Assembly: GCF_000142905.1 (NCBI RefSeq)
Contig: NW_013657674.1
Span: 528,709 to 592,708, forward strand
DNA from: Thecamonas trahens ATCC 50062
Lineage: Eukaryota; Protista; Apusomonadida
Direction of reading: 5' to 3'
Length of the DNA: 64,000 nucleotides
The position numbers and the translations under genes were made by a program. This document shows positions 8,644 through 35,401 of the stretch, in pieces; the stretch's first letter is position 1, and every line of letters starts with the position of its first letter. Under the pieces are notes generated by a model. It saw only the letters and a list, made by a program, of their open reading frames with translations, searched no databases and was not told where the DNA came from.

Positions 8644-11600
8644 ATGGCAAGCCACCGCTTCAGTCGGCCGCCCTCGGTAGCGTCCGCTGGCGGCATGCCT
8701 GGCGGTGGACTTGGGCCGCAACGACGCCCAAGCCTTTCAAATACACCCCGTTCGTTCTCGGCATCATCGCCAAGCCCTCTTTTGTTTGGGCAAAATCTAG
8801 GTGCTGGCTTTGGAGTGGGAGCTGGTTCGCAAACGTCGGCAAGTCTGGGCCGGACAGTCGGAAATACCTCTGCGTTTGCTTCCCTCTCGGCAGAAGCCTT
8901 CTCCCTCCTCGATTTTGACGAGACCCACCCTATGGAAAGCTCGATTATGATTGAGCCTGCTTCGCTCGGCAGCATGAGTCTTGACGACGTCGACATGTCG
9001 CTTGGTGACGACTCGACGGACGGATCGTCGCTCACGGCGCTCTCGGCGTTCGGCTCGTTTGACTGGAGCGACATCGCTGTGCTCGACGAACTTGGCTCGG
9101 GCGAGCTTGGCACGGTCCTCAGCATTGAGTACCAGGCCACGCCGTACGCGGTCAAGCTCCTCGAGCCGGGGGTGTCGGCCGGCGATGTGGCCAACAGCAT
9201 GCTCCCGCTCTTCTCGCTCTCGCACCCGAACATCTTGCGATTCTTCGGGGCGACGACCAACGGCGACGGTCGGGTCGGCATCGTGACCGAGCTCGCCGGC
9301 GGGGGCTCGCTCGCCGATTTGCTCAGCGTTCCAGCGCGCGTGCCGCAGCTAGACGAGCGCATGACTATGATGTACCACGTCACCCGCGCCCTGCACTACC
9401 TCCACTCCGAGTCGGTCCTCCACTACGACATCAAGCCGGCCAACATCTTCATCACCACCTCTGGCGAGGTTCGCCTAGGCGAATTTGGTTTTGCCTCGGT
9501 TGCCGAGCACGCGCGGCAAATTTCGCCGAGATACTGCGCGCCCGAGGTGCTCCTCGCCGATGACGTTGCCGCCGGGGACGAGGCCTCGGACGTCTACGCG
9601 CTCGGCGCAACCATTATCGAGGTCCTCACGCTCGCCTCGGTGTTTGACGGCGACGCGACTGCCGCCCGCATTGCCGAGCCGCACACCCGCATCTCGGACG
9701 ATGTCGTCACTCGCTTTGTGGAGCTCAACCTCCCAGAGAGTCTCGAGGAGGCTGTGCTGAATGCTCTTGAGCCCGACCCGCTTCTCCGGCCGCCGGTCAC
9801 CCGGATGCTCTCGGTCCTCCGCTCCGCCGACGCTCTGTTGCGGCGGCAGAGTTCGCTCGTCAATCCCTGGGCCTCCGGCCCTGGCCGTAGCGGGCAAGCA
9901 AGCCCTGAAGCCCTGCTCCATGATCTCGAGCAGTTGTGGGACGAGGTGCGCCTCACCGAGGAACCGGGCACCCTAGCGTCGGCACTTCCCAAGCTTATCG
10001 GCCTTGTCGGGATCCTTGTTCGCGCCCTCATTCTGCTCAAGCCGAGGACTGTGCTTCTGCGGGTGTTCGAGGGCGTGCTCGATGAGATCATTGGCCGAAT
10101 CCTCCTGTTCAACCTCTCGCGCCACGGCCGCGAGCTCGGCAAAGTGGCGTGCTCACTGCTGGAGATGCTCGGCAGCCTTCTCTGTGACGTTGTTGTTCCG
10201 ACCGAGGCCGAGACTGTGCTCGGCGGTGGGGAGATGAACTTGTCGCTCGGCACCCATTTTCTCGCCCGCGCGCTGCGCCTCCTCGTCAGCCCTGGTGGGG
10301 TGTACGACGGAGGCGCTGAGCTGCCGCGCAGCCGGGAAGAGCTTGCCGCGTTCGAGGCCACGTTGTATGTGGTCCATGGCGCACACGTGCTCTGTTTGCT
10401 CGAGGCTCGCGCCCGCCGGCTCCGCGACACGGCGCCTGACGTTGACAGCGGTGTCGGCAAGGACACTGCTGTGGCTCCTCTGCCAGAAACAATGGCCGTC
10501 TGCAAGCTTGTCATCTCACATCAGATTGCTGCTCTCCGCCTCATGGACGAAGCGCTCGACGCCGTCCCTGCCCGCGTCCGAATGGCCGAAGTTCGGACGG
10601 CCTCGCTCTGGCAATGGCCGCACACCAAGACCGCGCTCGCGCTGATCCACGGCGCCTTTCGCGCGTACTGCGTCGTCCCACGGGCGCCGGCCGCGCTCGA
10701 CGCCGAGCTGGCCAGCCTCCGCCGCGAGCTGGCCCCGGTTGCTACGCGGACGGCATCGGCGTCGCGGGCCATTGTGCCGCGCGCCCTCCAGTTTGCGCTT
10801 CGGCTTGTCCAGTTTGGCCAGACCTCGATGGCGCTCCGCACGGCCCACATGGTCTCGCGCTTCCTCTTTCGCCCGGAGCAGATCGATCGGTTTACCGTGA
10901 CAGAGCGCAAGCTCGTCAAGCGGCTCTACAGCGCGCTGGCGCAAGCCGATACCGAGGACGACGCCCTCCGCGCGCTCGTGAGGGTTCTCGGCCTCCTCCG
11001 CCGCAGGCGGTACCGCGCGGCCGCCATCTCACTCGCCCTTGCCGACTATTGTGCGTCGGCACGGTGGGCGCAGTACGCGCGCCGACTGGCCTTTGTGCGG
11101 CGGCGGGTGTTTGGCGAGGCAGCGCAGACTGGCTACAGCCAATTTGCCGAGCTCGAGCCAAGCGTCGACGCGCCGTTCAAGACGCTCGCCGACCGCATTG
11201 GCGAGCTTCTTGGCTACACCGTCCCGGTAGGCTCGAATGACGCGGCACTTGTGCCAGGGTCGCAGGCCGCAACCCGGACGTCGCTGCTCTCGGCGCTCAT
11301 GTCGATTCTCATCGCTGACATTCTGCAGGATATTGTGCGTATGCTCGGCTCGCCGCCAGTCGAGTACGCTGTGTTGGGCCTCGGGTCGCTCGCCCGCGGC
11401 GAGCTTTGTCCGTACTCGGACCTCGACATGGTGGTTGTGGTCCGCGAGTCGTCGCCAGCTGCAAGTGCATACTTTACATCGCTCGCCGAGGTTCTTGATC
11501 TCATGGTCACCGCCCTTGGCGAGTCGCCTGTCGACATGGGCAACGGCATCTCCTCGCCGGTTGTCCACGGCTTCCGCATGGACGAGGGTCCGTTCTCGGG

Positions 11601-14535
11601 CTCCAACACGTTTGTCCTCACACCGGAGGCACTCGCCCAGCGCCAGCGCGAGGCCATGACGGACCTCCGTGCCGGACACGACGTCGATCCCGAGACGTTT
11701 GGCTTGCGGACCGCCGCCTACCTCTCAGGCTCCAAGTCGCTGTACTTTGAGTATGCCAACGCTGTCCGCACTGTCCTCGACGAGTCTGTCGTGGCCACCC
11801 AGCAGTTTGCGATTCTTAACCTGGTGGCCAACCTGAAGGCCTTTACCCCCGATGGCCTCGCGGCGTCGTTTGCTCCCGACTCTGATAGGAGCGCGGTCAT
11901 TGACGTCAAGAGCGCACTCTGTCGGCTTGTCTCGTGTCTCCTCGACGGCCTGGCACTTTTCTTCCGCATTCCCGATGCCAACACCTACGCCCGCATCGAA
12001 AAGCTCATGGAGGAGAAGCACATCCACACTGACCTTGGCATCACTCTCTCGTACGCCATCGAGTGGATTTTCAACTTTCGGTCGTCTATCCACAATCGGA
12101 TCGGGCACGAGTCTGACTCGGTGGTGAGGGCCAACGCGCCGACGCTCAATCCGTCAGTGAGCGGGAGAGCCAGTCGCGCTGTCGGGCGCAAGTCGGGCGC
12201 GCCCCTCGAGATGGACCCCGTCGACGACGAGGAGCTCGCCGCCCTAACCCGCTGCGTCATCGAGCCGCTCCACGCCCTTGTCGCCGCGCACTGTATTCGG
12301 CACATCGACCTCATCCCACCTGCGCTTGCAGAGCGCTATCTCGTCATGCTGCCGCACGTGAGCAGCGTGCCAAACGCATCGCCAGCATCGCCGCTCAACT
12401 CACCGCTCCCGCTGCACGCAGCGCGGTGGAACCACTTGCTCCTTCTTTGCTCGCGGACCGTTCCGGCGCCGTATCCGGAGACCGCGCTGGCCGCTCTGCC
12501 GCCGAGCGCCGACACGCTTCGGCGCGGTACGTTCTGGATGACCTCGTCGGTGTCTTCTGTTCCGGTCTGTGGTGTGCTCAAGCTGTCACTCGCACAGGCG
12601 CTCGTCGAGCGTGCACCTGCCGTAGCACTCGGCAGCAGCACAACGGCCATCCAGCTCGGCCCGTTGTTCTTTGTCGAGCTTGACTCGTGCGAGCAGCCCG
12701 AGCTGCCGAACTTGTCCATGCAGCTGGCTGCCGCCGCTCTGCCTCAGATTCTCTTCCACGGTGCGGTCCAGCGAGTTGAGGCTGCCATCGTGTGGGAGGA
12801 GGCGACGTCGCAGTTCTCGACATGGCTTGTCTGTGAGGCCTTTCAAGTTGCTAGCCCGCTCGGTGGCAAGCCTCCGCCGGAGCCGCCGGAGCTCGATGGC
12901 GTTTTCGGTGCGGCTGGAAGCCGGGCGAGCATCGGCCTGCGCAGCTCTGATGACCAGATTATGGAGGCGTCGACCTCGCCCACAATGGGCGAGGCTGTTG
13001 AGGATGCCGGCATGATGGCTGCCACGGCGTCGCTGGCGGCTGGTGGCAGCTCGTCTAGTCTCGCCAGGTTGCCTTCCGAGGCTGTAGATGATGCCGACCT
13101 GGAGCTCGAGTCTCTCGATGAGGCTTGCATGGCCAGCGGCAGCGGAAATGTGTCTGAGACCGTGGATGACGCCGAGACCGTGGACGATGCTGGCGATGGG
13201 ATCTCGGCGAGGGCTAGGGTGCGGCGCGAGTCGCGGCTGAGCTTCTCTGGCTCGATCAAGATGGTGGCCAACGGGGCTCAGACCGATGTGGTCGAGGCAC
13301 AGCGATGGGCGCCTGACTCTCTCTCTGCACAAGAGCACACTCGGCACCTCCTTGTCTCGCTCCTGACAGCGTGCTCGGGCTTTGGTCTGGACGACTATGT
13401 GTGGACAAGCGACGGCCGGCTGATGTGGACGCTGGCTCGGTGGCCGGTCTTTACGCGCGCGCAGCCTGCAATCAGCGGCGGCAGCGCGCATCCTGCGTAC
13501 CTCCCGCTCCTCTCGAATGGACTGGCACTCGTGCTCACGGCTGAGCATGCTGACGGGCCGATTGACTTGCTCACTATCCAGGACCTGCTCCGGCTGCCAG
13601 CAAGTGAGCTGATCGAGATGTGGCTGAAAATGGCTGCAAGCGTCGCGAGTCAGGTCCGGCTTCTAGTCGGCATTTGTACCCATGTGAGCGTGCTGCCGCC
13701 AGCGAGTATCCGGACTTTGCAGCGCGGGACAATCGCTCAAAAAGCGAGCGAGGCTGTGAGCTGGATGCTGATTGTGCTCGACCAGATCAAGCGTCTGCTA
13801 CACGCTCAACCGCTGCGGCTGACCAAGCTGCAGCTTTTGACCTCTGTCATCCCACCATTCCAGCATGTGGCTACCTTTGTACGGCTGATGCAGCGGCTCC
13901 ATCCGCGAGGCCTTGACCTGCGCTTTGTCCACACTGCGCTCAGGCACGCGCTGGTGACTCACCCGTCGGCGCTAGTGACTGGCGTCGGACTCGACACGGT
14001 CGTTACTGATCTCCCGACCGACCACTCCAAGATCGCGACTGTGTTGACCAAGGAGCGTGCGCCGCTAGGTCACGATGTGACGGTCTTTGTCGGGTTTATG
14101 CAGTCGACGCTAGCGACACTGACTCGAGGACAGATTGGCGAAGCCATGGATGGCTTTCTCGCCGCGATCTTCTGCAACGCTCGGCTCGGCGGGTTTGATG
14201 GCGGGAAAAGCGATGCTGTGGTGAATCCGCAGTCGCTCACGCCACAAAGCTCGCGGCTGCGGGCAAACACGGCCAGCATTAATGCGGTCTCGAGCCAGTG
14301 CCCGGTGGAGCAGCACGCACGCGACCGGACGTTCTCGCTGTTTGGAGGAAGCGAGGCTCGAACGGTGCGAATGCGCGGCGCTACGGTGATCGGTGATGAG
14401 CTGAGCATCAAGGTCGGAGCGAGTCGCATACCGACACGGACACGTACCCATCAGAAGTCGACGAGCCGCCTGAGAGGGAGACAGAGACGACGCTCGAGTT
14501 TCGCCAGATCGGCGCGGTGCTGGGCAAGGCACTAG
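8644..14535 (+). CDS. Giant multidomain protein, 5' part: protein kinase + helical region + DUF294-type nucleotidyltransferase + substrate-binding domain + degenerate atypical kinase
   Basis: Kinase motifs LGSGELG, AVK, HYDIKPAN, EFG, APE, DVYALG. NTase motif GLGSLARGELCPYSDLD (~11377-11427). DUF294_C-like IDVKSALCRL...NTYARIEKL...FR..IH. Confidence 0.85.
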   Translation: MASHRFSRPPSVASAGGMPGGGLGPQRRPSLSNTPRSFSASSPSPLLFGQNLGAGFGVGAGSQTSASLGRTVGNTSAFASLSAEAFSLLDFDETHPMESSIMIEPASLGSMSLDDVDMSLGDDSTDGSSLTALSAFGSFDWSDIAVLDELGSGELGTVLSIEYQATPYAVKLLEPGVSAGDVANSMLPLFSLSHPNILRFFGATTNGDGRVGIVTELAGGGSLADLLSVPARVPQLDERMTMMYHVTRALHYLHSESVLHYDIKPANIFITTSGEVRLGEFGFASVAEHARQISPRYCAPEVLLADDVAAGDEASDVYALGATIIEVLTLASVFDGDATAARIAEPHTRISDDVVTRFVELNLPESLEEAVLNALEPDPLLRPPVTRMLSVLRSADALLRRQSSLVNPWASGPGRSGQASPEALLHDLEQLWDEVRLTEEPGTLASALPKLIGLVGILVRALILLKPRTVLLRVFEGVLDEIIGRILLFNLSRHGRELGKVACSLLEMLGSLLCDVVVPTEAETVLGGGEMNLSLGTHFLARALRLLVSPGGVYDGGAELPRSREELAAFEATLYVVHGAHVLCLLEARARRLRDTAPDVDSGVGKDTAVAPLPETMAVCKLVISHQIAALRLMDEALDAVPARVRMAEVRTASLWQWPHTKTALALIHGAFRAYCVVPRAPAALDAELASLRRELAPVATRTASASRAIVPRALQFALRLVQFGQTSMALRTAHMVSRFLFRPEQIDRFTVTERKLVKRLYSALAQADTEDDALRALVRVLGLLRRRRYRAAAISLALADYCASARWAQYARRLAFVRRRVFGEAAQTGYSQFAELEPSVDAPFKTLADRIGELLGYTVPVGSNDAALVPGSQAATRTSLLSALMSILIADILQDIVRMLGSPPVEYAVLGLGSLARGELCPYSDLDMVVVVRESSPAASAYFTSLAEVLDLMVTALGESPVDMGNGISSPVVHGFRMDEGPFSGSNTFVLTPEALAQRQREAMTDLRAGHDVDPETFGLRTAAYLSGSKSLYFEYANAVRTVLDESVVATQQFAILNLVANLKAFTPDGLAASFAPDSDRSAVIDVKSALCRLVSCLLDGLALFFRIPDANTYARIEKLMEEKHIHTDLGITLSYAIEWIFNFRSSIHNRIGHESDSVVRANAPTLNPSVSGRASRAVGRKSGAPLEMDPVDDEELAALTRCVIEPLHALVAAHCIRHIDLIPPALAERYLVMLPHVSSVPNASPASPLNSPLPLHAARWNHLLLLCSRTVPAPYPETALAALPPSADTLRRGTFWMTSSVSSVPVCGVLKLSLAQALVERAPAVALGSSTTAIQLGPLFFVELDSCEQPELPNLSMQLAAAALPQILFHGAVQRVEAAIVWEEATSQFSTWLVCEAFQVASPLGGKPPPEPPELDGVFGAAGSRASIGLRSSDDQIMEASTSPTMGEAVEDAGMMAATASLAAGGSSSSLARLPSEAVDDADLELESLDEACMASGSGNVSETVDDAETVDDAGDGISARARVRRESRLSFSGSIKMVANGAQTDVVEAQRWAPDSLSAQEHTRHLLVSLLTACSGFGLDDYVWTSDGRLMWTLARWPVFTRAQPAISGGSAHPAYLPLLSNGLALVLTAEHADGPIDLLTIQDLLRLPASELIEMWLKMAASVASQVRLLVGICTHVSVLPPASIRTLQRGTIAQKASEAVSWMLIVLDQIKRLLHAQPLRLTKLQLLTSVIPPFQHVATFVRLMQRLHPRGLDLRFVHTALRHALVTHPSALVTGVGLDTVVTDLPTDHSKIATVLTKERAPLGHDVTVFVGFMQSTLATLTRGQIGEAMDGFLAAIFCNARLGGFDGGKSDAVVNPQSLTPQSSRLRANTASINAVSSQCPVEQHARDRTFSLFGGSEARTVRMRGATVIGDELSIKVGASRIPTRTRTHQKSTSRLRGRQRRRSSFARSARCWARH

Positions 14536-17309
14536 CGGCAGATGCTGTGCTCCGCGTGGCTCTGGTTGAATTGGTAGCGTCGCTGGCGCAGCCGGTCACC
14601 GACGAACTCATGGTGCTACTCGCTGGCGTGCTTGGTGCCGAGTCTCGGCTCTCATCGTTGGCCCTGCTCGGCATTCCGGAGACGCCGTCGCGTCTCTTTG
14701 CGCTTCTTGGCGAAAAGAGCCGACGGCAAGCGATGATGGCCAAGCTGCGGCGGGCGTCGAGCAGTTCCTCTCTGCTGCATGGGCTCTGTTTGGCATCGGG
14801 CTCGCTGCCGCGCAACTCGCTTGTCCGGGCGCTGTCGTCGGATGCCAATGCTATGGCGCTGACGACGGTGACCCTGGTAGGAGTGAGCTCGCTTACTAGC
14901 TTTGCCAAGTCTGGAGTGACGCGGACGGCGGTCGTCCCGCTCTGCCTCCCGGCATTGCGAACACTCGAGCTCGCGTGGTGTCCGCAGCTGGAGTGCGTGG
15001 CGATTGATGCTCCGGGTCTGCTGGTGGTCTCGCTCGCCTCGCTCACGCGTCTGCGGGTGATGCGGCTGGATGAGGCGAAGCCTCAGACGGTGCTGGATCT
15101 GAGTAAGTGGCGGACAATGTCAGACACGCGACTGGTGCAGGTGCTTGCCGGGCTGCCGCCGCTGACGGTCGAATTGGACTCGCGGTCACAGATAAGCCGG
15201 CCAATCCGTGAGGCTGTTACCGCGGGTACGCTTGGAAAGGTGCTCACGGTCGAGGTGTTGAGCGGTGCGGAGGAAGAGGAAGAGTTTATGTTCCTGTCAC
15301 CCTCTGCGTTCGTCGGAACTGATCTCGACGCGCTGGGCGAGATGCACACGTTGCTGTGGCAGATGTTCAGCTGTGGGCGGGCGTCGGCAACATGGTACGC
15401 CGAAGGTGGCTCGATGTCGCGGACGAGCGAGCCAGGATGGAGTGCGCCGGCGGACTGTCAGCCGGCGCCGAGCGGCGGGCCACTGGGCGACGTCGCCCGG
15501 GTGGTCGAGTGGCTGGATGAGACGCGCGGGCTGATGACGCCTCAACGTGCGGTACAGCTTGTGTCGCGGCACGTGCTGCCTGGGCTGGCGCGGACTGAGC
15601 TACTTCTCCGACAGGATCTTGCGGTCTTTGTGGTGCTTGTGGAGTTCTCAGAACGGATCCGGCGGCTGCACGTGACAAACCAGGTTCTACTCGACAAGGC
15701 TGGATTTCTGCGGATGCTGACGAGCTTGCAGGATCGGCGGTCTTGGGTGACGGACGTGGTGCTTTGCAATGTCGAAGTAAGCGAGTCGTTGATGACAGAG
15801 CTGGCGCCTGTTCTCTGCCACTCGTCGGCGCACTCGCTCAACTGCATGCGGGTGAAAGTGAGCGAGGGCGCGGTCCGGCAGCTAGGCGAGGCGCTGATGG
15901 CGGCGGACAGTACGCTTTTGAACATGCAGATGGTGGCTTGTGAGCTGACCGACGACCATGCGCAGTGGCTGGTACCGGTTCTCCATGCGGCGGAGTCGCC
16001 GCTCGAAGTCCTCTCACTAGTCGACAACAAGTTGACGCCACAGTGGCTGATGCCGGGCGATGACAAAAGCGTCGGTCTGGGCTCAGCGCTGCAGTCACTC
16101 GATCTGAGCTTTACGCCGGGTGTGCTACGGCTGCCGCGTAAGCGGCGTAAGGCACTGACCGGCAAGTTTGCGTCGACACTTGCAAGCTTGATGCGGAAGC
16201 TCACGGTCTTGCACCTCACCGAGTGCGGAGTGACTGACGATGACGTCGAGGTCCTGGTCACTGCGGCAAAGCAGGCCGAGTGCCCGCTTGTCCGGCTCGA
16301 GCTCGGGCGCAACGCTATCAAGTCGCGCGGCGCTGTGCTCGTGGCTCAGTTGATTGCGCGACCAGGCTCTCTGCTCTCGCAAGTCGAGCTCTCGCGAAAC
16401 CCTATTGGGCCCAAGGGCGCGGCAGCTGTGGCAAGAGCGTTAACATCGCCGCATGCGGTGGTGACCTGGCTTGGCCTACGGGGCTGTGGGATCAAGGACG
16501 CCGGGTTCAGCAGTGTATTCAATGCAGTGGGTCAGGCCGGGCTGCGAATGACGGTTCTCGACGTGGGCGAGAATATGCTGTCGTCGCGTAAGCGCGACAA
16601 GTCGTGCGACGCGCTCATCCACATGCTGGAGGCCAAGTCGTCGCCGTGCGTCACGTCGCTCTTCCTCGACTCGATTGGAGTGTCGGACCTGGCGCTCTCG
16701 TCGCTGACCAACGTGCTGAGCCTCGGCAAGAACCAGCTGGTGGAGCTCTCGCTGGCCGGCAACAAGCTGACCGAGCGGTCCATGCGGAGCGTGTGCATCC
16801 TGTTGCGGTCTCCGACAAGCTTCATCATGAAGCTGGACGTGTCGCGGTGCTCGCTGACGGATGCGAGTCTGGGATGGATCAACGAGGCGCTGCATCACGA
16901 GAACTTCAAGCTGAGCTACCTCGCGGTCGGCGGTAACGACTTGAGTCGGGCTGGGCTGCTCGACTGGAGCGCTGACTGGCGCAGGCCGCCAGCAGGCGAT
17001 CTGATCATCGACCTGGGCGCAGTTCGCGATACTTCGCTACCGTCGAACGCGGCGACGACCAAGCTTTTGTCGTCTGTGGGCGACATTGCGCCTGGTGCGA
17101 CGTCGTGGATGACGGTGGATCCTGTGGCGGAGTCGCAACTGCGGTCGTCCGCGTCGTCATCATCGGAGGGGCTTTCAGCCATCGACTCTGAAGAAGTCGG
17201 TATTGTTGCGCGACTGCGGAGCCGCGGCGCAGCGCTCGGCATTGTGGTGTGGGACGCAGCAACGGCTCGGGTAGCCGTATCGGGAACTTCGGCGATGTCG
17301 CGACCGTAA
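14400..17309 (+). CDS. LRR region (ribonuclease-inhibitor/NLR-like), probably the frameshifted C-terminus of the upstream gene
   Basis: Repeats such as LEVLSLVDNKL, LVRLELGRNAI, LSQVELSRNPIG, LVELSLAGNKL, LSYLAVGGNDL. This frame is open from 14400, overlaps the upstream ORF and has no ATG near its start. Confidence 0.8.
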   Translation, partial: AEHQGRSESHTDTDTYPSEVDEPPERETETTLEFRQIGAVLGKALAADAVLRVALVELVASLAQPVTDELMVLLAGVLGAESRLSSLALLGIPETPSRLFALLGEKSRRQAMMAKLRRASSSSSLLHGLCLASGSLPRNSLVRALSSDANAMALTTVTLVGVSSLTSFAKSGVTRTAVVPLCLPALRTLELAWCPQLECVAIDAPGLLVVSLASLTRLRVMRLDEAKPQTVLDLSKWRTMSDTRLVQVLAGLPPLTVELDSRSQISRPIREAVTAGTLGKVLTVEVLSGAEEEEEFMFLSPSAFVGTDLDALGEMHTLLWQMFSCGRASATWYAEGGSMSRTSEPGWSAPADCQPAPSGGPLGDVARVVEWLDETRGLMTPQRAVQLVSRHVLPGLARTELLLRQDLAVFVVLVEFSERIRRLHVTNQVLLDKAGFLRMLTSLQDRRSWVTDVVLCNVEVSESLMTELAPVLCHSSAHSLNCMRVKVSEGAVRQLGEALMAADSTLLNMQMVACELTDDHAQWLVPVLHAAESPLEVLSLVDNKLTPQWLMPGDDKSVGLGSALQSLDLSFTPGVLRLPRKRRKALTGKFASTLASLMRKLTVLHLTECGVTDDDVEVLVTAAKQAECPLVRLELGRNAIKSRGAVLVAQLIARPGSLLSQVELSRNPIGPKGAAAVARALTSPHAVVTWLGLRGCGIKDAGFSSVFNAVGQAGLRMTVLDVGENMLSSRKRDKSCDALIHMLEAKSSPCVTSLFLDSIGVSDLALSSLTNVLSLGKNQLVELSLAGNKLTERSMRSVCILLRSPTSFIMKLDVSRCSLTDASLGWINEALHHENFKLSYLAVGGNDLSRAGLLDWSADWRRPPAGDLIIDLGAVRDTSLPSNAATTKLLSSVGDIAPGATSWMTVDPVAESQLRSSASSSSEGLSAIDSEEVGIVARLRSRGAALGIVVWDAATARVAVSGTSAMSRP

Positions 17310-17329
17310 TTGGCTGTAGTGCAGCCATT

Positions 17330-18589
17330 TTAAACGATACTGCTACCACGCCGGACTCCACTATTGGGCCGGATTGATGACATGGCGGTGGCTGCGTCGT
17401 TGGTGCTCGAGGAGCTCGAGCGTTGGTCTGCAATGCGAGTGACAATGATCTTGGAGTTGTCATTGGAATCGGCTTCATCCGAGTCGCTGACATGTACGGG
17501 TATGACCGACGAGCGGCGATGAGAGTGAGGGGCGCCTCCCACGACAAGAACTCCCGCCTCCGCGGCAGCCACCGAGTGGATGGCCTTTTCGTACGCACGG
17601 CGAGAACCGAAGCGAAAGTGGACAGGCGTCTTGAGCGACGACGGGTAAAAGTAGTAGATGATACCCACACTGACCGAAGCGATGGCGGCGAGCGAGGCGA
17701 GGGCATCGAAAATGTCGAACACAATGGTCTCAGTCCTTACAATCTCGTCGAGATCCCACGAGAACTGGTCGATGGTGATGCCGAAAGAGGCGTTGGTGTA
17801 GCTCCGCAGAGTTGGCGACGGCTCTTGCTCAAACGAGCGGATGACGGTGGCGGAGAGAGGGAAGCTGGTGATGGCATTCTGATGGAGCCTCTGTATGGTT
17901 GACATGCCGATGTGCAAGAAGGCCGTGCCGTGCGTCGGCAGCGGGAGCGGCTTAAAGGCCGCTAGTGTTGTCGAAGAAGCGAGTTCCTGGTCGGCGGAAC
18001 GGATCATGGCATACACAGCGGTCGTGCCACATCTGGCCTTGTCGTTGAAGCACAACTGAGTCGAGCCGCGGATCGAGAACGAGAAGGTCGGATTGGTGGC
18101 GCTAGGGAAGACGTCTGCAAGCGGATAATCGATGCAGGAAAAGCCAAAATACGTGTAGGCCACTTCGTTGCACGGAACAGACGTGGGAACAAAGGCGACG
18201 AGCGGCGTGCCATCGGGAGCTGACTCGCCAGTAGGCATGTACAAGTTCTTCTCGCATATTCCGGCCACCATTGGATCGAGCGGATTGAGCGAGCATGTGG
18301 TAAGGAAAGTTCCGTCTGGAGCCTTGGTGCGGGAACGGAAGGATGCGGTTGTCACCGGCCGATCGCGAGCCTCGACCAATTTGCGGCCATTGATGACCAT
18401 ATTGAACACGTTGCCAGCAAAGGCAAGTAGCACAATAGCGACAAAGAGGACTCGCTCCCACCCGTTCATCCACTTGAGCAGCATGGCGTTGGACAAGATG
18501 TTGAATAGAGGGAAGGCTTGATTGTAGGCGCGAGTAGGCGCGAGCGGGACAGAAAGAGTGCGGTGGAGCCAACCACGATGTTTGTTCAT
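17330..18589 (-). CDS. Two-TM protein with Cys-rich extracellular loop; ENaC/ASIC/PAC-like channel candidate
   Basis: TM1 VLFVAIVLLAFAGNVFNMVI is followed by PVTT...FLTTCSLNP. The loop has several Cys. TM2 is ETIVFDIFDALASLAAIASVSVGIIYYF. Start uncertain (ATG 18589 or 18484). Confidence 0.55.
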   Translation of the reverse strand: MNKHRGWLHRTLSVPLAPTRAYNQAFPLFNILSNAMLLKWMNGWERVLFVAIVLLAFAGNVFNMVINGRKLVEARDRPVTTASFRSRTKAPDGTFLTTCSLNPLDPMVAGICEKNLYMPTGESAPDGTPLVAFVPTSVPCNEVAYTYFGFSCIDYPLADVFPSATNPTFSFSIRGSTQLCFNDKARCGTTAVYAMIRSADQELASSTTLAAFKPLPLPTHGTAFLHIGMSTIQRLHQNAITSFPLSATVIRSFEQEPSPTLRSYTNASFGITIDQFSWDLDEIVRTETIVFDIFDALASLAAIASVSVGIIYYFYPSSLKTPVHFRFGSRRAYEKAIHSVAAAEAGVLVVGGAPHSHRRSSVIPVHVSDSDEADSNDNSKIIVTRIADQRSSSSSTNDAATAMSSIRPNSGVRRGSSIV

Positions 18590-18857
18590 ACTGAGCCGCA
18601 ATTGCTGCCACGAACGTTGCCGAGCGGCGGAGTACCGGGACAAAGCGGTCAATGCGAGGCTAGCACAGGAACAACAGCAAGAAGAGCACCGCACTGCGAA
18701 GCGCTGATGATGCGCGATGTGTGAGGTCCAATGACTTGGCACATGAAGGCGATGTTTGACGGTGTCGATTGTCATGGCCACGGACGTGATCTGGGAGATG
18801 AGGCAGGTATGGACTAGCACCCGCCTCTGGCTTGGGCGTAGGTTTGTTTAGACGGGC

Positions 18858-26564: not shown

Positions 26565-26999
26565 GTGCGTGGGGGTGGCGTGGCTCGGTGGTGGTGATGG
26601 AGGGGGGGGGGGGGGTTCTGGGCGTGGGTGTGGGTGTGGGTATGGGTGTGGTGTGGGTGTGGGTGTGGGTGTGGGTGCGGTGTGCGCGCCAAAGGAGGCA
26701 GTTGGTGGTGGTGGAAGGGTTGGAGGGAGATGCGAACGTGTTCAAACTTTTGGCGCGGATTGGGGGAAGGCTGGCTTGGGCATCGAGCCATTGGTGACTG
26801 CCGCCGACTGCTGCCGGCAGCACAGCCGACCCGAACAACGGCCACGCTGGTCACGCCACCCACCCACCCACACCTCACACACACCTTCACACACACCTTC
26901 ACACACACCTCCGCACACACCTCCACACCACCACCACCTCCTCCTCCTCCTCCTCCTCCCCACCTCCCCCCCCCCCCCCCCCCACCTCATACGGATAGC

Positions 27000-27695
27000 A
27001 TGGCGGCAGGCACAGCCGACTCACTCGACCAATTCGCCGAGTACGAGGACTATCTTGACTCGTTTGTGCTCCCTGTTGATCTGTACTATCTTGGAGATGA
27101 ATCGCTGGCTAGGCAGCTGGTGGAACTCGACGTCAAGGGCCCCGGAGACTTGCTCTCGCGGGCAGAGTTCAAGAGGCTCAAGTCGGATGAGACGCAACGA
27201 ACGGCCAAGATCCGTAACGCTCCAAAGTCACTGGCCCATGCTGGGCTAGAGGGCGAGTTCCGTGACTATCCGCTGCTGGTCGAACTCGCACAGCGGGAGG
27301 AGCTGGTGCTCTCGGGCAAACTGGCTACCATCATCTTCATCCGCCACGTCAACCGCAAGGGCCAGGAGATCTCCGGCTACATCGACTACGCCCATCGACT
27401 CAAGACCGACAACTTTGAGGAGTACTTTGCTCTCCACCGCGTCTTGCTCCCGCGGCCCTCGGACCTCTCGTTCTACAACTGGGAGACACAGACGTGCACC
27501 TCCAACGCCACCACAAACTTCCAGGTCATTGCTGACAACGAGAAAGGCCTGCAGTTTAAGAACAAGCGCGATCGCAAGATCATCAACGTCAGCCCCGAGG
27601 AGCATCCGGGCCACTCGTCGTTCCGCAAGCCATTGGAGAACACGCAGTACGTCCAGTGTGTGCTGTACGACCATGTCACTCGCAGAAAGTCGTAG
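27000..27695 (+). CDS. CFAP299: Cilia- and flagella-associated protein 299 (DUF4464)
   Basis: YEDYLDS, DLYYL.DE.LARQLVEL, IIFIR, GQEISGYIDYAHRLK, DLSFYNW, FKNKRDRKII, YDHVTRRK; ATG at 27000. Confidence 0.92.
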   Translation: MAAGTADSLDQFAEYEDYLDSFVLPVDLYYLGDESLARQLVELDVKGPGDLLSRAEFKRLKSDETQRTAKIRNAPKSLAHAGLEGEFRDYPLLVELAQREELVLSGKLATIIFIRHVNRKGQEISGYIDYAHRLKTDNFEEYFALHRVLLPRPSDLSFYNWETQTCTSNATTNFQVIADNEKGLQFKNKRDRKIINVSPEEHPGHSSFRKPLENTQYVQCVLYDHVTRRKS

Positions 27696-27730
27696 ACAGC
27701 GCCCAAACGGGTGAACTCGGTAAACGCAAC

Positions 27731-30700
27731 CTACGTGTGCTCGAGATCAACCCGCGACACAAGGCCGCCGCGGTCGACCAGCTGCAGCGAGCCGTCACCT
27801 GTCTCGATAACGCCAACAATGGCCTCCCGGGTCGAGAACGTGAGGTCGGCAGAGCCGCCGGTGGCTGCTACGTCGACATCAAAGATGCACACCGTGTTGG
27901 CAAGGTGAGCAAGAGAGTCGGCTGGCGGCTTGCCGGATGCGCTCGAGAGCACCCGTCCGTCGTGCAGCTGTTGCAGGTGAACGACGGTGCCAGTGTGCGC
28001 AACGGCGAGCCGCGTCACAGACGACTCGAGCCCCTTGTCGTAGGGCTGCTTGAGCGAGACAACCGCTAGCTGGCCCGAGTGCCCGCCGACAACAAGCCGA
28101 CCATCGGCAAGCACAACCATGGCATACAGGTCACCGATGCCCGGTGAGATAGTGTCGAGCGGCAGTCCACGCGACCACAAACGCACCGTTCCGTCATATG
28201 AGGCCGAGACCAGGTCGCCGCAAGCCGTGGGTGCCACCTGCCGCACCGCGTCAGTGTGGCCATCCAGCTCGTCGCCGAGGTGCAACTTGCTGCGCCCCGA
28301 ATCGCCGCCATCACCCGGTAGCTCATTCCAGTGCCACATCTCGATGTTGTGCCCATAGCGGCCGACCGCAATCTGCTTCTCGTCGAGTTGTGCCAGACTC
28401 AGGACCGGATACGAGACAAGGCCCGGGCGCGCTATGTCCACCAGCCGCCTCATCGACTCCCCGCGGATGACCTCGCTTCGCGCCGCAGGCTCGGAGCTGC
28501 GCGTGTCGACAAGCACTACCGGCCGATAAATGGTAGGCAAGACGACTGAAGACCGCCCAAACGGCGAGGCCTCGGCCTCGTCGAGGCTCGTTACCACCCG
28601 GCGCGTCCGCGGGTCGTGGATCACGTCGCGAAGATGCCACACAAAAAGGTTACCTGCAGAGTCCCGCGACTGCTGTGAGCCCTCGCCAGCGACAAGCTGC
28701 CGCTGCGGCATCTTCCACATCAGCGCCGTAACCACGTACCCGGGACCCGAGAGTGTGATGAGTACCGTCCAAGGCATGGTGCTCGTGTCAAAGACAACAA
28801 CCACGCCACCGTCGTGCTCGCCGGCAAACTTGCGCGCCTTGTGGCCGTACTGCTCTACGCACAGTGCGCATCGGCACGGTGGGAGCCGGACCGCCACCGC
28901 TACGACGTCGCGACACTCTAGTTGAGCCATCGCCGTCACCTCGAGACTCTCGCCGACCTGGAACGACTCTGCTCGCGAGCCATAGGTGACAGGGAGCTTG
29001 AAGAGCGGCACAGCCGTCGTTTCGCGCACCACATCGCCGGCAACGGAGATCTCAGAGCCGGTCTCAGACTCGACGCCGGCGTCGTGGCGAACAGATACCG
29101 CTCGCGCCCGTGTCTCTCCGCCGCCGAGCAGCCCGCCACCAGGTCCGCCGCCGATCTTGGCCCGCCGCGGCTTCTTCGAACGTACTTGGGCACGAGGCTC
29201 GAACACAATCCGCTTGCTCATCCACCACGAGTTGGCCTCCTCGACCAGCTGCCGCATCGAGTGCTCCACACGCCCGATCGGTTCGGGGGCCGGACCCAGC
29301 TCGTCTGCATCGTCTGCCCGCTGCCGATACAGCGTATCTGCTAGGACTGTCGGAAGTTCCGCCAAGCGAGAAACCACAGTCTGGATGCGGTCGTACGTCT
29401 CTTGGGTGAGTGGGTTGTACGAAATGTCGACAGCCACAAGCTCAACAGCAGGGTCGGCCGGGACAAGCACCGGCGGGATGGGGTCGCTATGGCCATCGGA
29501 TGCCTGGTTGTCAATGTCTGACTCTTTGCCCGAGCAACTCTCGCCCGCCACGCACTCGCTCACACTGCCGTGGGGCGAGCCGCTGCTGGCCGTGACGCCG
29601 GCGTCACCGCCATCGTTCACTGGTTCTGCACAGCCAGGTGTGTCCGATCCGAGAATGGGCACGACAGCATTTCCGCGGATGCTCTCTGATTCTGCACTGC
29701 CAAAAGCGTTCGATCCGCCGTCGCTCACCGGTCCTGCGCTGCCAGGAGTGTCCGATCCGAGAATGAGGAAAACAAGGTCCCAAGCAACGTCTCCGGTGAT
29801 CGCGTTGTGTGCAACGTTGAGTGTGCGGATAGATTTCGTGGCGCTCATTGCGTTGACGAGCAGCAGCGCTTGGCTGTCGACAAGCCCACAGCCGCGAAGA
29901 TCGAGGTGCGTGATCGGGCGGTGGCGCGAGTTGAAGGCAAACAGCATCCGGAGACCATGCTGAAAGGTACGCGGGGTTCGTGCAAAGATGAGCCGCGGAT
30001 CGTGCGCCACAAAGGTGCGGAGCGGGGCCCATTTTGCGTTGCTTAGTGTGCAGACGGCAAGGTCGGGCGCGGCTCGCTCGACTTGATCGAGCACGGCGTC
30101 GGTGACTCTGGTGCCGGAAGCGACCAGAACCCGGAGGTTGCTTGCATACTTGGCCAGGTCACCGAGAGTGACCAGCTTCTCGCATCCCGAGACATCGAGC
30201 TTGGTCAGATTGCGGCAGTGCTTGAGAATCGCCGACAGCATGGTGTCGGTGAGGAGTGACGAACCCTGGATGGTGAGCTTCCGAAAGTAAGTTCCGCTCA
30301 TGGCGTCAAAGAGGTGGCCCTGGCGGAGAGGATCCAGCGAGGCAAAGTCGACACGGGACACGACGTCCTCCTTGAACTGCGAGAGACGGAGGTTGATAAA
30401 GGCAGCGAGGTCGCCGCGCATGAGGTCGCGGAGCGCGTTGGCAGCCTGCGCCTTGACGAGCTTGCTCAGCTCGCCGGTGAGTTCGATGGGAGTGACGAGG
30501 CCGGCCTCGCGAGCCAGGTCCCGCGCCGACTTGCGCCTCCACGACAGTCCGGCCTTGGGTGGCGCGTGCAGGCGACGGAGCCGCTTCTCCTCGGCCAGCG
30601 AGGTGGCGACGTATGCCTGCTGGTTGCGCTGGATCTGGATGCTCGGCGTGACGGTGACGAGGCCACCGCCGCGTGAGCTCTTGTACTGGCCAGAGGAAAT

Positions 30701-33700
30701 GACGGCAAAGCGTGCGGCAGCCGACGGGAGGCTCTCGTTGTCGAGGACGGTGGCGTAGAGCGGCGCCAGAGTCGGCTCGCCGGCCTGGAGCAGGTCCCGC
30801 AAGGTCAGCGGCTCGCCTTCACTCATCGACGTGATAGCCGACTGCAGAGTGAGAATCTTGTTAAAGATGACAAAGACGAGGCCCGGCTTGAAGCGAATCT
30901 CCAGCGTTGTGGGAAAGTTGCGGCGGGTGGCGAGTGCATCGATTATCGCCGGTGGCGCAATGGTCTCCATTCGCCGGTGGTAGGCATCGAGCTCGGCGAG
31001 CCAGTGGCCGAGCACGCTCTCGGCATCGACGCGGGTAAAGTTGGCGGCAACGACTGGGTCGATGGGCAAGTTCATGTCGGCCATGCAGAAAAGAACCGTC
31101 TTGACCCGGGCCTGTGCGGCCGAGAGCCGATGCGCAATGAGCGGCGCCACAAAAGCATGATCGTTGTCGATGGGCACTGGGCGGCGGACTAGGCCGTTGG
31201 GCGCACCGGGCTCGACCACATCCTCGACCACGTAGTTGTCAAGCTTGCCGTCCTCGGGATTGGTGATGAGGGCGAGGAGGACTTGCTGCGAAAAGTACGC
31301 GTGGTCGAGGCCGGGCACTTCAAGCGCAGATGCGAGCACGTCCTTGAGAATGGGACCAGGCACGGTCTCTGAGACCTGAAAGACATAGTCAGCGTCGTCG
31401 TTGATGTGCCTCACGCGGATGAGGTCGGTCGGCGGTGTGCCGTCGCCAAACACCAGGTGAGCGAGAAGGTGGACGGCGAGCTCGGCACCGGGGAGCTCCG
31501 GGTTTTGCTTAAAGTGGAAGCCGCCGACTTGGACAACGTTGCGGCGGCCGTGGGAGGAAGTCTGTGTCACGCCTGTGGCCGTAAACAGCTCCTCGGCAAA
31601 CTCGTCGCGGAGGCGGCGGACGCGGCCGTCGCGGACGCCGATAAAGGCCTGCGGGCCAGCGGCGGCGTAGGCGCTGAGTCGGGCATCGCCGACAAGCTCG
31701 CCATCGCTCACTACTTCGGCGATGGCGTCCATTTTCCACGCCCAGCGCGCCTCGACCATGTGCTTCATGGCGGCGAAGGGGGCGGACTCGCCCCACGAGG
31801 TGGTAAAGTCGGAGAGCATGGCTGAGAGCGGGTGGAGGACAAGGGTGACGGCGTTGCGGAGGTACGTCGAGTCATCTCGCGTGAGCTGAACCAGTTGAGA
31901 GAGTGTAGCCGGCGGCGTCGCGTCGGCGTACCAAACCGACTCCTCCTCACAGCCGTGCATGAAATGGGCCTTGTAGCGGATGGTACAGGCAAAGGTGTGG
32001 AACTTGGCCCAAGCACGGGCCATGTCGCGGTGGACGACGCCAGCGTCGCGGAGGGCGGCGATGCGGCCCTGAGTCGAGGCGCAGGCGATGCCAACGTAGA
32101 GGGCGAGGCCGTCGAGGGCGAGAGCAATGAACCGACAGAGGTTGTCCTTGACAAACAGTTCGCCGGCGAGTGGCACTTCGCCAGGAGAAAACACGCCATG
32201 TGCCGTGTTGTTCCGTTTGAGCGTCTCGATGGCGTAGAACTGGCGGAGGGCAACGTAGGGAAGGATAGCTTGCTCGGACGAAAGCTGCACCTGGCGGCCG
32301 TCGCGAATGCACGCGGCCAATTCTTCGGCCGACATGGGCGCGGCGTCGCCTGCCGCGCCGTCTCCACGGGAGCGAGCAAAGCGGGTGACAATCTTGACGG
32401 GCGCGTTGAGCGCTCGGCGAACTCGCTTGGCCCGCTTGGTCGTGCCATCGTCGTCGTAGTGGTAGTAGTTGTCGGCCTCGTCGCGGCGACGCTGATCAAG
32501 CAGATCCTGTGCGGCAGCGATGGCCGGATTATCGATGAGCATGCCAGAGGCCTCGTCCTTGCGACGATTGTGAAGGGCCCATTGGAGGATGAGGTTGTTC
32601 GAGGTAGGGAGAACGTCATCGAGCTTGGAGGCAAAGACATCTGCGAGTGCGGCGCAGTAGTCGCTGAACAGCTCGGGCTCGCCAGCCACGTGGCACCCGG
32701 AGCGAATGCCGTGGCCGATGGGGTCGACGTCGGCGCCGCCGAGCAGGTCACAGGCGACCTCGACTTGACGACGGGCAAGCTCGCCGGGCGTAGTGATGGT
32801 GTTGACCGGCGAGAGTGCGGCGACGTCAAGGCGGAAGCCGTCCTTGAGCACCGAGCGCTGACCGCGGTCAAAGCAGAGGAAGGGTGTCTCGCCGAGGCCG
32901 ATGGTTTGTAGCTCGAGGAGCTCCATGGTGGCCTGAAAGTAGCTGAGGATGTGCGGCTCGTCCGAGGCGACAAGCAGGATGGCATCAAGGTCGGAAAAGG
33001 GACACATTTCCTCGCGAGCGAGCGAGCCGAGGCCAACGACAGACCATGCGCAGGGCGGGGGCCGGTGATAGACATGGCGTCCTCGATGAGCGTCTCGAGC
33101 AGTGCGCAGGTCATGCCACCCATGAGACGCATAAGAACATGAATACCCTCATCGCGCTGGAGCACATGGACAAACTGGTCCTGATGTGCTGCGAGGAGCG
33201 AGAAGATCCAGTCGACCGAGGACGGCGGCGCAGGAGTTACATCCGCGTCCTCGGCGGCTTGACGGCTTGAGCCATGTGCTGCCGATGCCGGGACAAGGCC
33301 TTCAGTCACAAGCAGGGCCGTCAGCTTGCGGGTGAAGACCGGCGAGACGGCCTCGAGCGAGCGCGGCGCAAGGCGGGCGGCGTCGACGCGCGGCTCAAAG
33401 AAGCGCTGGTAGAGGAGGGCCACAAAGTAGCGCATAAAGTGGAGGGTACCCCGGTTGACAAACCACGGGAGAGACGCAAGGTCAGCCGCAGGCAGTGGGC
33501 TGACGTAGGCGTCGAGCAGGGCGGCACCGGCCGGCGAGAGCGGATGAGCGGCAACGGCACGCATAAAGGCGGCGGTGGTGGCGAGTGGAGCAAGTGCAGC
33601 AGCATGTACGTTGTCGCCGGTCAGTCCGGCATCGTCGGCGACTTGGATGGCCGAGTAGGCGTAGAGAGTCGCGATCTTGTGTCCGTTTGCGTATGCCCGC

Positions 33701-35298
33701 GACGGTGGAAGCGAGGTGGCCTGGTGCGAATAGAGGGCGGCAAGAGCAGTGAGAAGCGTGACCTGCGCGTCAGCAAGCCCGGCCTTGTCGGCGAGCTCAA
33801 ATGCGGCGGTGGTGTAGTTGAGCGCAGGGGGGAGCCAAAGCTCGGTGTCGAGGGCGCGCGGGAGAAGAAAGGAGTCAATGAGGCCGCAGAGACCATCGAC
33901 AAGATCGAATGCGGCGGCGGTACGAGCAGGGGATGCCGCAAGAGCTTCCGAGTGCGAGGCAGCCACAAGCTCGCGGATGACCATGGTGCAATGGTCCGAC
34001 GCTTCCGCAACGTCAGCCTCGCTTGGCGAGTGGATGGCCATATGTAGGTGAGCAAGGCGGAGGGCGAGGTCCGCAAGCGGTGGGATGATGGCATCCTGGT
34101 CGAGTCTATCCACCAGGGAGAGGCGGGCGCAGAGGATGCGGAGGCCGCGGGCCTCGGCCCATGGAATGTCGCCCGGGGTGGACGCCGCCGAAGTCGCCGC
34201 GTGGATGATGTCGACGAGCGGAAGGAGGGTTGCGGCGTCGAGAGGTGTCTCGCGGGTGACTAGCGGAGTCGCGCTGGTTGTTGTATGAGTTGCGTCGCCC
34301 GCCTCGGGCGCGGGTTCGGGGTTGCCAGCCTCGGGTGCGAGTTCGGTATGATGAGCTGCATCGCCAGCTTCGGGCGCGGGTTCGGGGTTGCCAGCCACGG
34401 GCGCGAGTTCGGTATGATGAGCTGCGTCGCCCGCCTCGGGCGCGGGTTCGGGGTTGCCAGCCTCGGGCGCGAGTTCGGTATGATGAGCTGCATCGCCAGC
34501 TTCGGGCGCGGGTTCGGGGTTGCCAGCCTCGCGCGCGAGTTCGGTATGATGAGCTGCATAGCCAGCTTCGGGCGCGGGTTCGGGGTTGCCAGCCTCGGGC
34601 GCGAGTTCGGTATGATGAGCTGCATCGCCCGCCTCGGGCGCGGGTTCGGGGTTGCCAGCCTCGGGCGCGAGTTCGGTATGATGAGCTGCATCGCCCGCCT
34701 CGGGCGCGGGTTCGAGGTTGCCAGCCTCGGACGCGAGTTCGGTATGATGAGCTGCATCGCCCGCCTCGGGCGCGGGTTCGGGGTTGCCAGCCTTGGGCGC
34801 GAGTTCGGTATGATGAGCTGCATCGCCAGCTTCGGGCGCGGGTTCGGGGTTGCCAGCCTCGGGCGCGAGTTCGGTATGATGAGCTGCATCGCCCGCCTCG
34901 GGCGCGGGTTCGGGGTTGCCAGCCTCGGACGCGAGTTCGGTATGATGAGCTGCATCGCCCGCCTCGGACGCGGACTCGGTGCCGCCAGCCTCGGACGCGG
35001 GCTCCACCTCCACCAAGTTGCCGACCTTAACCGCAACCTCTTCGGCATCTCCAGCCACCACGTCGGCAATGGTGACATCAAGCTTCCCGCCATCCGCTTC
35101 GGCTTCTACTCCAATGTCATCCACACCACCCGCATGCCCGTGGCCGCCAACCTGGAGCTGGCTTGCGCACGCACCAGCTCCACCTCCACCACCACCAGTC
35201 CCGTCCGCCATGGCCATGTTGCCGCCACTACCGTCATCACCAGCCACAGCAGAAGTTTCTTCTGCCTCGCTTGGGCATGCGGTGTCTATGGCCGACAT
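27731..35298 (-). CDS. Giant multidomain protein (~2520 aa, frameshift at ~33057-33061): tandem repeat + helical region + DUF294-type nucleotidyltransferase + PI4K/HipA-like kinase + LRR + WD40
   Basis: Adding one C in the C5 run joins the two ORFs as LIEDAMSITG-PPPCAWSVVGLGSLAREEMCPFSDLD. DUF294_C-like VKDNLCRF...STQGRIAALRDAG. Kinase-like FHFKQNPELPG, NPEDGKLDNY, PIDNDHAF. LRRs LTKLDVSGCEKL, ITHLDLRGCGL. WD40 GHTDAVRQV...SASYDGTVRLW. Confidence 0.85.
34287..34975 (-). repeat. Coding minisatellite, ~10 x 66 bp (HHTELAPEAGNPEPAPEAGDAA)
   Basis: ggtatgatgagctg recurs every 66 bp from ~34345 to ~34939. Confidence 0.95.
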
Positions 35299-35356
35299 GC
35301 TTGCTGTACTGGGGTGACGTGAAGTCTTTTGAGCGCAGGAGGAGGGCGGAGGAGGG

Positions 35357-35360
<4 letters not shown>

Positions 35361-35401
<41 letters not shown>
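35361..35401. repeat. Poly-G tract (41 nt)
   Basis: Uninterrupted G run (poly-C on the sense strand) ~60 bp upstream of the ATG at 35298. Confidence 0.95.

Follow-up and report, generated by a model that had tools for sequence, protein, structure and literature searches.

A family of giant proteins in Thecamonas trahens with a predicted GlnE/DrrA-type nucleotidyltransferase and, often, a PI4KII-like kinase module

A 64,000-nucleotide stretch of Thecamonas trahens DNA (the window; part of contig C6 of the 28.7-Mb genome) holds two giant genes, here called A and B, which lie on opposite strands and share a nucleotidyltransferase (NTase) domain, a helical partner and leucine-rich repeats (LRRs). 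The original prediction, made without database searches, took them for paralogues of a modular family in which an LRR/WD40 sensor controls protein nucleotidylation or nucleotide-messenger synthesis together with a kinase output. The findings are best explained by a family built on a protein nucleotidylyltransferase of the GlnE/DrrA type, often combined with a kinase module that resembles type II phosphatidylinositol 4-kinase (PI4KII) and with repeat scaffolds (LRR, WD40, TPR), an explanation to which we assign a probability of about 60%. Established features are the folds and motifs, the kinship of the genes as paralogues, an undamaged open reading frame (ORF) in gene B and purifying selection on that gene.

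Results

Two Giant Genes with a Shared Core

Gene A is read from the forward strand as two ORFs of 1964 and 930 codons, which overlap and leave no intergenic gap between them. The first ATG, at 8644, starts the protein with MASHRF, and the second ORF, in another frame, carries the LRRs. Gene B (AMSG_01683) lies on the reverse strand. Its start was taken from the public model, with alternative ATGs at 35298 and 35442, and in the reference it appears as a 1758-codon ORF (27731–33007) overlapped by an upstream ORF in a different frame. The ORFs of 930–1964 codons are free of stops, and the G+C content (GC) of the two genes, 63%–65%, resembles that of the remaining window (∼60%–67% for the window). 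The pieces flanking each frame change were searched separately, neither gene being joined or repaired. The genes and their common core are as follows.

8644–17309, forward strand: gene A, two ORFs (8641–14535 and 14517–17309)
11257–11778, forward strand: gene A, predicted DrrA/GlnE/DUF294-type NTase catalytic domain (Pfam DUF294, 6.5e-9; AlphaFold model)
11383–11427, forward strand: gene A, G-X11-D-X-D motif GSLARGELCPYSDLD, with the third Asp in GFRMD at 11569–11583
11875–12150, forward strand: gene A, helical DUF294_C (KNTase_C/HEPN-clan) partner (Pfam DUF294_C, 7.7e-6)
27731–35217, reverse strand: gene B (AMSG_01683), a single continuous ORF of ∼2495 codons with the missing base counted
32621–33064, reverse strand: gene B, predicted NTase catalytic domain (BLASTP against A, paralogue alignment, Pfam)
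32984–33028, reverse strand: gene B, G-X11-D-X-D motif GSLAREEMCPFSDLD, with GFRLD at 32825–32839
31919–32269, reverse strand: gene B, helical DUF294_C partner (Pfam DUF294_C, ∼1e-4; BLASTP against A)

The absence of a significant alignment between the two genes had been named beforehand as a refutation of the prediction. BLASTP aligned the two NTase blocks significantly (41% identity over 143 residues, E 6e-27), and likewise the two helical blocks (35% identity over 78 residues, E 8e-8), but the kinase-like block, also claimed to be collinear, reached only 17.7 bits (E 16, not significant). LRRs do lie downstream in both genes, ∼12 RNI-type repeats in A and ∼5 in B. Nearly all of the strings quoted in the prediction were found in place: in gene A the NTase string at 11344–11427, GFRMD as listed above, the helical string at 11899–11964 and IQLGPLFF/QPELP at 12649–12708; in gene B GFRLD, the helical string at 32093–32155 and the kinase-like string VQVGGFHFKQNPELP at 31490–31534. 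The NTase string of gene B, however, is absent as written. GLGSLAREEMCPFSDLD is present at 32984–33034, the residues preceding it fall in a different frame, and the full string requires a frame change at ∼33056–33062, within a run of C's.

The Nucleotidyltransferase and Its Helical Partner

Against Pfam gathering scores of 21 bits for DUF294 and 22.5 bits for DUF294_C, gene A scored 36.2 bits for the former; for the latter it gave 22.0 bits in the whole ORF, just below the cut-off, and 26.2 bits as a domain alone. Gene A also has weak Pfam matches to SidM_N, NTP_transf_2 and GlnE, and weak GlnD matches were returned for the NTase by NCBIfam. In gene B, DUF294_C is borderline (22.4–22.7 bits), and DUF294 remains under the gathering score (18.2 bits) because the searched piece ends at an assembly error, described below. 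A profile of 11 Thecamonas paralogues (alignment A3) was compared with 177,635 PDB sequences and had a sole match, Legionella DrrA/SidM (E 1.1e-7). This match takes in the helical part as well as the catalytic one, the helical domain of gene A corresponding to DrrA residues 216–310.

The NTase and helical region was modelled with AlphaFold (AF2) for gene A alone, with a predicted local distance difference test score (pLDDT) of 76.8. The model matches DrrA with Z 20.9 and a root-mean-square deviation (rmsd) of 3.4 Å over 250 residues, and two GlnE adenylyltransferase domains with Z 17.9 and 17.5; the DrrA and GlnE matches extend over 250–259 residues. Unrelated chains stay below Z 7, as with 9dbh (Z 5.5). 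The G-X11-D-X-D motif, which is the signature of SidM and glutamine synthetase adenylyltransferase (GS-ATase) domains (PMC12409994), is intact in both genes. In the sequence alignment, A, B, the paralogues C12, C24 and C4, and most other paralogues all retain the Asp of GFR[ML]D. Helical domains of the DUF294 type belong to the KNTase_C/HEPN clan (PMC3710099). Sequence and, for gene A, the model assign the NTase of A and B to the GlnE/DrrA protein-adenylyltransferase type.

This assignment bears out the predicted GlnD/GlnE/DUF294 class of protein-NMPylating enzymes, as indicated by Pfam, by the sole PDB match and by the fold. The proposed pol-beta fold likewise withstood the comparison in the model of gene A, with the third Asp judged from the sequence alignment, and the catalytic motif is retained in both genes as had been stated. 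The other product that had been envisaged, a nucleotide messenger, fared less well. Synthases of cyclic or linear oligonucleotide signals do occur within the pol-beta NTase superfamily, but the strong matches of sequence and structure are to enzymes of the GlnE/DrrA branch, which act on proteins and possess the helical partner, and the next chains drop below Z 7. Because the closest relatives all modify proteins, messenger synthesis seems very improbable.

Gene B Is Intact and under Purifying Selection

33056–33057: one-base deletion in the reference, giving C5 in place of C6 on the reverse strand
32957–33003, reverse strand: false intron of 47 nt in the public model (tblastn of P0002 onto the window)

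The quoted NTase string of gene B implied a repair of the reading frame that had not been stated. Contigs of four public runs were aligned to 30000–35500. One extra G stands behind 33056 in those of runs X1, X7 and X3, which comprise an estuary metagenome, a marine metagenome and a run of the organism itself from 2020; the fourth run has no coverage there. The implicit repair was therefore correct, the frameshift is a homopolymer error of the reference assembly, and gene B consequently forms one ORF. The public AMSG_01683 model (P0002, 2479 aa) has a precomputed Pfam list that contains WD40 only. Part of the NTase catalytic motif is missing from this protein because the false intron bridges the one-base assembly error; in practical terms, a single missing base has cost the public model its own active site.

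Between gene B and the run contigs there are 14 single-base differences, 11 of which are synonymous. This indicates purifying selection on gene B, as the original prediction had suggested for the NTase activity. In view of the contigs of the other runs and the synonymous excess, pseudogene status is rejected for gene B.

Bacterial contamination of the assembly, or decay of transferred genes into relics, might account for the apparent frameshifts in both A and B and for the bacterial identity of their closest relatives. The GC of 63%–65% is, however, like that of the window and differs from the 35%–38% of the bacterial relatives; the neighbouring genes are of eukaryotic type (RING finger, inositol polyphosphate kinase, Pkinase); the ORFs run for 930–1964 codons without stops; and the frameshift of gene B is an assembly error in a gene whose variants are mostly synonymous. 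Such an artefact appears exceedingly improbable, and contamination is rejected on account of the GC and the neighbouring genes.

A Kinase Module in Gene B and Its Probable Relic in Gene A

30404–31687, reverse strand: gene B, PI4KII-like atypical kinase module (FK, NPEDGKLDN and IDNDHAF retained; fold comparison)
12643–13920, forward strand: gene A, candidate relic of the PI4KII-like module (hhalign and large profile, marginal)
9079–9801, forward strand: gene A N terminus, eukaryotic protein kinase domain (Pfam Pkinase, E 7e-34, aa 147–387)

The kinase module of gene B has no match in Pfam even at E 10 (PI3_PI4_kinase included), in NCBIfam or among the PDB sequences, and its identity is given by fold comparison only. 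Its AF2 model (pLDDT 70, predicted TM score 0.73) matches PI4KII beta (8a5x) with Z 15.5 and rmsd 3.2 Å over 241 residues, and 4yc4 with Z 15.2; weaker matches are CotH (Z 11), HipA and PI4KIII-beta (∼9) and LepB (7.9). Six residues, K60, D146, D150, N151, D174 and N175, are invariant in the modules of B, C12, C3 and C24, and they fall in the K of FK, in D-x3-D-N and in the DN of IDND. The D-x3-D-N loop and the IDND segment presumably resemble the catalytic loop and the DFG-equivalent of PI4KII. The likeness to PI4KII alpha and beta thus consists of the modelled fold, the Lys in the FK strand and these two segments, and the difference lies in the want of any match at the sequence level. Clear paralogues of the module are present in the Thecamonas genome, and a library of 1.84 billion proteins yielded 1463 clusters, 423 of them at E < 1e-30, with proteins mostly of 1000–5000 aa. 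The module makes up an unnamed family of its own, which numbers at least 1463 clusters and whose modelled fold resembles that of type II PI4-kinases.

An atypical kinase had been claimed for both genes. In B this holds, with the PI4KII-like fold at Z 15.5, whereas in A it is only marginal. The block of gene A is not found by a 7-sequence profile of the module; hhalign gave E 0.022 at a probability of 2% over 164 collinear columns, and a 124-sequence profile gave E 0.0097 in a 17-protein search, both marginal. Because of these marginal scores, gene A is not counted as a proven carrier. The stretch is split by a low-complexity insert of ∼150 aa, has no Lys in the FK strand, reads ACSGFGLDD for NPEDGKLDN and contains no IDND. 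These features make it probable, not proven, that it is a dead relic of the module, and with the catalytic-type residues lost, the kinase output foreseen for this part of gene A is not upheld.

The protein kinase domain at the N terminus of gene A retains the VAIK Lys, HYD-x4-N and APE, is of the non-RD type (HYD) and has EFG in place of DFG. Its catalytic activity is uncertain because the DFG Asp is replaced by Glu.

At Least Eleven Divergent Paralogues

The NTase core is present at at least nine loci in the Thecamonas genome, every one in a giant ORF, and BLAST adds C3 and C32. With these, the family numbers at least eleven members, all of them giant, soluble proteins of several domains in which no convincing transmembrane segment is found. 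Repeat and signalling domains differ between members, and the description of the family as modular is apt: Pkinase is found in A and C15, DEP with TPR in C1, DEP in C32, TPR in C38, LRR with WD40 in B and C24, and LRR in C3. Five members (A, B, C12, C24 and C4) have the G-X11-D-X-D motif in full; C32 has D-x-E, and in C15, C1, C38, C3 and C45 the motif is eroded.

Erosion of this kind raises the alternative that the proteins are mostly noncatalytic scaffolds, in which the NTase and kinase folds serve as nucleotide- or protein-binding pseudoenzymes within large signalling platforms. The loss of DxD in the five eroded paralogues, the probably dead PI4KII-like module of gene A and the EFG for DFG in the protein kinase domain of that gene would agree with such a role. 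On the other hand, A, B, C12, C24 and C4 keep both the motif and the third Asp though they are otherwise unalignable, gene B retains all of its kinase catalytic-type residues, and the bacterial relatives retain G-X11-D-X-[DE]. A mainly scaffolding function is accordingly judged improbable.

The family proteins resemble nucleotide-binding leucine-rich repeat receptors (NLRs) and other signal transduction ATPases with numerous domains (STAND proteins) in that repeat arrays (LRR, WD40 or TPR) stand at the C terminus and an enzymatic domain at the N terminus. They differ in the central nucleoside triphosphatase (NTPase) that defines this class: Pfam gave no match to NACHT, NB-ARC or AAA in A, B or the examined Thecamonas paralogues, and none of the examined family proteins has a credible Walker A motif, the sole G-x4-GK[ST] being isolated in the C-terminal part of gene A. 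Because this central NTPase was not found, the comparison to NLRs made in the original prediction fails, and an NLR reading is rejected.

Two loci of the family have further features. Thecamonas model P0040 (C1 47000–56999; 1625 aa) joins RabGAP-TBC to the PI4KII-like module, which we take to be the same enzyme pair as in the Legionella effector LepB; the matching ORF, C1b, has weak ankyrin matches. Paralogue C15 (1297–8186 of its locus) mirrors gene A in that a Pkinase ORF overlaps the NTase ORF in another frame, which may be another single-base assembly error.

Relatives in Bacteria

Outside Thecamonas, carriers of the kinase module include Chlamydiae and Dependentiae and, among the Alpha- and Gammaproteobacteria, Caedimonas, Paracaedibacteraceae (with Candidatus Paracaedibacter symbiosus) and others. 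There the module is usually present as two tandem copies per giant protein, without a Thecamonas-type NTase. These tandem-module giants of protist-associated bacteria are 1000–3400 aa long, and at some loci several such genes stand in a row. A smaller set of proteins has the NTase–kinase pair of the gene B type. P0117 (F-box, NTase, kinase, WD40) is on a bacterial contig of 38% GC with EF-Ts and radical-SAM genes, and P0090 (DUF294, DUF294_C, kinase, LRR) is on a bacterial contig with insertion sequence (IS) elements. P0082 adds WD40 to the pair. P0127, on a compact 158-kb contig from a JGI metagenome, combines SidM_N/DUF294 and the kinase module with two to three Ras/Roc GTPase domains, and the gene next to it codes for a 2642-aa protein in which ankyrin repeats accompany DUF294 and DUF294_C. 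The bacterial contigs with the NTase, kinase and WD40 or LRR design have a GC of 35%–38%, and the catalytic motif is kept in the bacterial relatives as G-X11-D-X-[DE]. The relative P0034 carries OTU.

When 124 kinase modules were placed in a FastTree, a branch with support 96 divided 15 rows from the 109 others. The 15 rows include Thecamonas and all NTase-linked modules, and every row from a named bacterium is among the 109. In a word-index protein search with the NTases of A and P0117 and the kinase module of B as queries, nearly all matches were to the queries themselves or to Thecamonas; a search of this kind fails on proteins as divergent and compositionally biased as these. The original prediction had raised the possibility of a co-opted endosymbiont effector, and a link to bacterial effector-like proteins is indeed supported by the NTase–kinase–repeat design on bacterial contigs and by the wide occurrence of the kinase module by itself in named protist endosymbionts.

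A different bacterial arrangement is seen in P0153, which has a related NTase at its N terminus, together with an NB-ARC/AAA_16 NTPase, DUF7779 and TPR. This is a STAND-type protein with the NTase in the effector position. A DUF294 NTase, DUF7779 and TPR arrays are also what P0153 has in common with the adjacent giant (8001–14276 and 385–7866 of one locus). Related NTases at the N terminus of these NB-ARC/TPR proteins, together with the homologues among effector-like bacterial proteins, would suit a role in innate immunity or conflict, in which ligands from microbes or viruses would be sensed by the LRR, WD40 or TPR arrays, setting free the AMPylase and kinase as outputs. So would the growth of the family within this lineage to at least 11 copies, which are very divergent and have often lost catalytic residues, and the variability of the repeat arrays between members. 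Such sensors would follow NLR-like logic without a STAND NTPase, and may have evolved in an arms race against similarly designed effectors of bacteria. However, no NACHT, NB-ARC, AAA or credible Walker A is found in the examined Thecamonas members, DEP in other members and RabGAP or Ras/Roc in the kinase-module relatives are suited to housekeeping signalling, and LRR and WD40 are general protein-interaction modules. An immune function is therefore considered unlikely.

Discussion

Proposed Function

In the favored explanation, a family of GlnE/DrrA-type nucleotidylyltransferases, the NTase would move AMP (or UMP) from a nucleoside triphosphate to a hydroxyl of the target protein, by analogy with GlnE, GlnD and DrrA. 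The kinase module of gene B, to go by its modelled fold, may phosphorylate a phosphoinositide or a protein, and the repeats would pick targets or partners. In gene A, the NTase looks active, the PI4KII-like module would be the dead relic described above, and the N-terminal protein kinase (HYD, EFG) would have been added. The most likely field of action would be small-GTPase and membrane-traffic signalling, which is suggested by DrrA as the nearest solved relative, the Ras/Roc fusion of P0127, the RabGAP-TBC of P0040 and DEP in sister genes; this assignment of targets is weak and tentative. The family and the giant effector-like proteins of low-GC bacteria probably have a common ancestry through horizontal transfer. 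No direction of transfer is drawn because the NTase tree is poorly resolved.

Several points weigh against this explanation. DxD is gone from about half of the paralogues, and noncatalytic roles are therefore common in the family. The kinase relic of gene A is barely detectable, and that gene changes frame within 14400–14535. An NTase profile was without a match in the genomes of five endosymbionts, all of them carriers of the kinase module. The link to GTPases comes from fusions in other proteins and from the nearest structure, not from A or B themselves. In the RNA data, the one run contained only 5% of the sampled words, and the gene was not clearly present in any run. Finally, the function is inferred throughout.

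Comparison with Known Systems

The N-terminal adenylyltransferase domain of DrrA/SidM (PDB 6yx5, 3nku; Pfam SidM_N) is the best structural and the sole PDB sequence match. It shares G-X11-D-X-D followed by a helical domain within a large multidomain protein. DrrA is, however, a secreted bacterial effector with a Rab1 guanine nucleotide exchange factor (GEF) and a P4M domain that binds phosphatidylinositol 4-phosphate, whereas A and B are encoded by a eukaryote, lack GEF and P4M, carry kinase, LRR and WD40 domains, and are only ∼17% identical to it. GlnE, GlnD and the bacterial DUF294 proteins (PF03445 and PF10335) are alike in their Pfam matches, the GlnE fold and a helical domain of the KNTase_C/HEPN clan. 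Bacterial DUF294 proteins typically come with cNMP-binding and CBS modules. A and B have neither of these nor a PII or glutamine synthetase context, and are giant and eukaryotic.

In Neochlamydia, an amoeba symbiont, the expanded family NEX2 has 50 members with F-box, OTU, DUF294 and TPR (Domman et al., 2014; PMC4209131). A DUF294 domain in mid-protein, repeat arrays, eukaryote-like domains and a large lineage-specific expansion are common to NEX2 and the present family, and, compared by domain description only, similar accessory combinations are seen in C1 and C38 of Thecamonas (NTase with TPR), P0117 (F-box) and P0034 (OTU). A kinase-like module and eukaryote-encoded members are not described for NEX2 in that paper.

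AMPylases have been grouped into GS-ATase, FIC domains and kinase-fold enzymes, with GS-ATase/SidM in bacteria only and FICD and SelO in eukaryotes (2025 review, PMC12409994). A literature search found no published work on these Thecamonas genes. The kinds of domain are known. What is not described is the PI4KII-like family itself, its combination with an AMPylase of the DrrA type, or the expansion in a eukaryote. It is conceivable, if doubtful, that these proteins are the first eukaryote-encoded AMPylases of the GS-ATase/DrrA type, a third class beside FICD and SelO and in the same chain as a new family of PI4KII-like kinases. An intact, selected domain of this type in a free-living eukaryote would widen the bacteria-only picture of the fold. 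If the proteins are such AMPylases, the host would itself possess an enlarged repertoire of "Legionella-style" modifiers of Rab and phosphoinositides. Bacterial effectors of like design could have evolved from these, or the host could use them as a counter-weapon against such effectors. The family would offer a tractable system for the origin of effector modules of the Legionella, Chlamydia and Dependentiae types.

Other Features of the Two Genes and Their Neighborhood

14400–14535, forward strand: gene A, change of reading frame (one missing reference base would restore the frame)
15762–17006, forward strand: gene A, RNI-type LRRs, ∼12 repeats with a period of ∼29 aa (Pfam LRR_6, 8.5e-13; regular-expression spacing)
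29366–30298, reverse strand: gene B, short LRR region, ∼5 repeats with low-complexity interruptions (Pfam LRR_6/LRR_4)
27878–28384, reverse strand: gene B, C-terminal WD40 beta-propeller (Pfam WD40, 5.7e-7; beta-propeller models)
34285–34999, reverse strand: gene B, coding tandem repeat in the N-terminal part, 66-nt (22-aa) unit, 10.8 copies

The offset between the two ORFs of gene A (14517 − 8641 = 5876 = 3n + 2) has the same direction as the error in gene B, with one base missing. An exact 30-nt search of the metagenome contigs near the gene A junction gave no match. The 66-nt tandem repeat of gene B is nearly perfect (94% matches), and the contigs of the other runs mostly break within it.

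Between genes A and B, at 17330–26564 on the reverse strand, there are two ORFs of 496 and 2568 codons. Neither has a Pfam match, and the longer one has no match among PDB sequences and does not resemble the family. A 1665-codon ORF immediately upstream of gene B (35566–40563, reverse strand) contains a right-handed beta-helix region (Pfam Beta_helix, 5e-9). At 4861–6246, on the forward strand, an inositol polyphosphate kinase domain and a GNAT acetyltransferase domain are joined in a single ORF.

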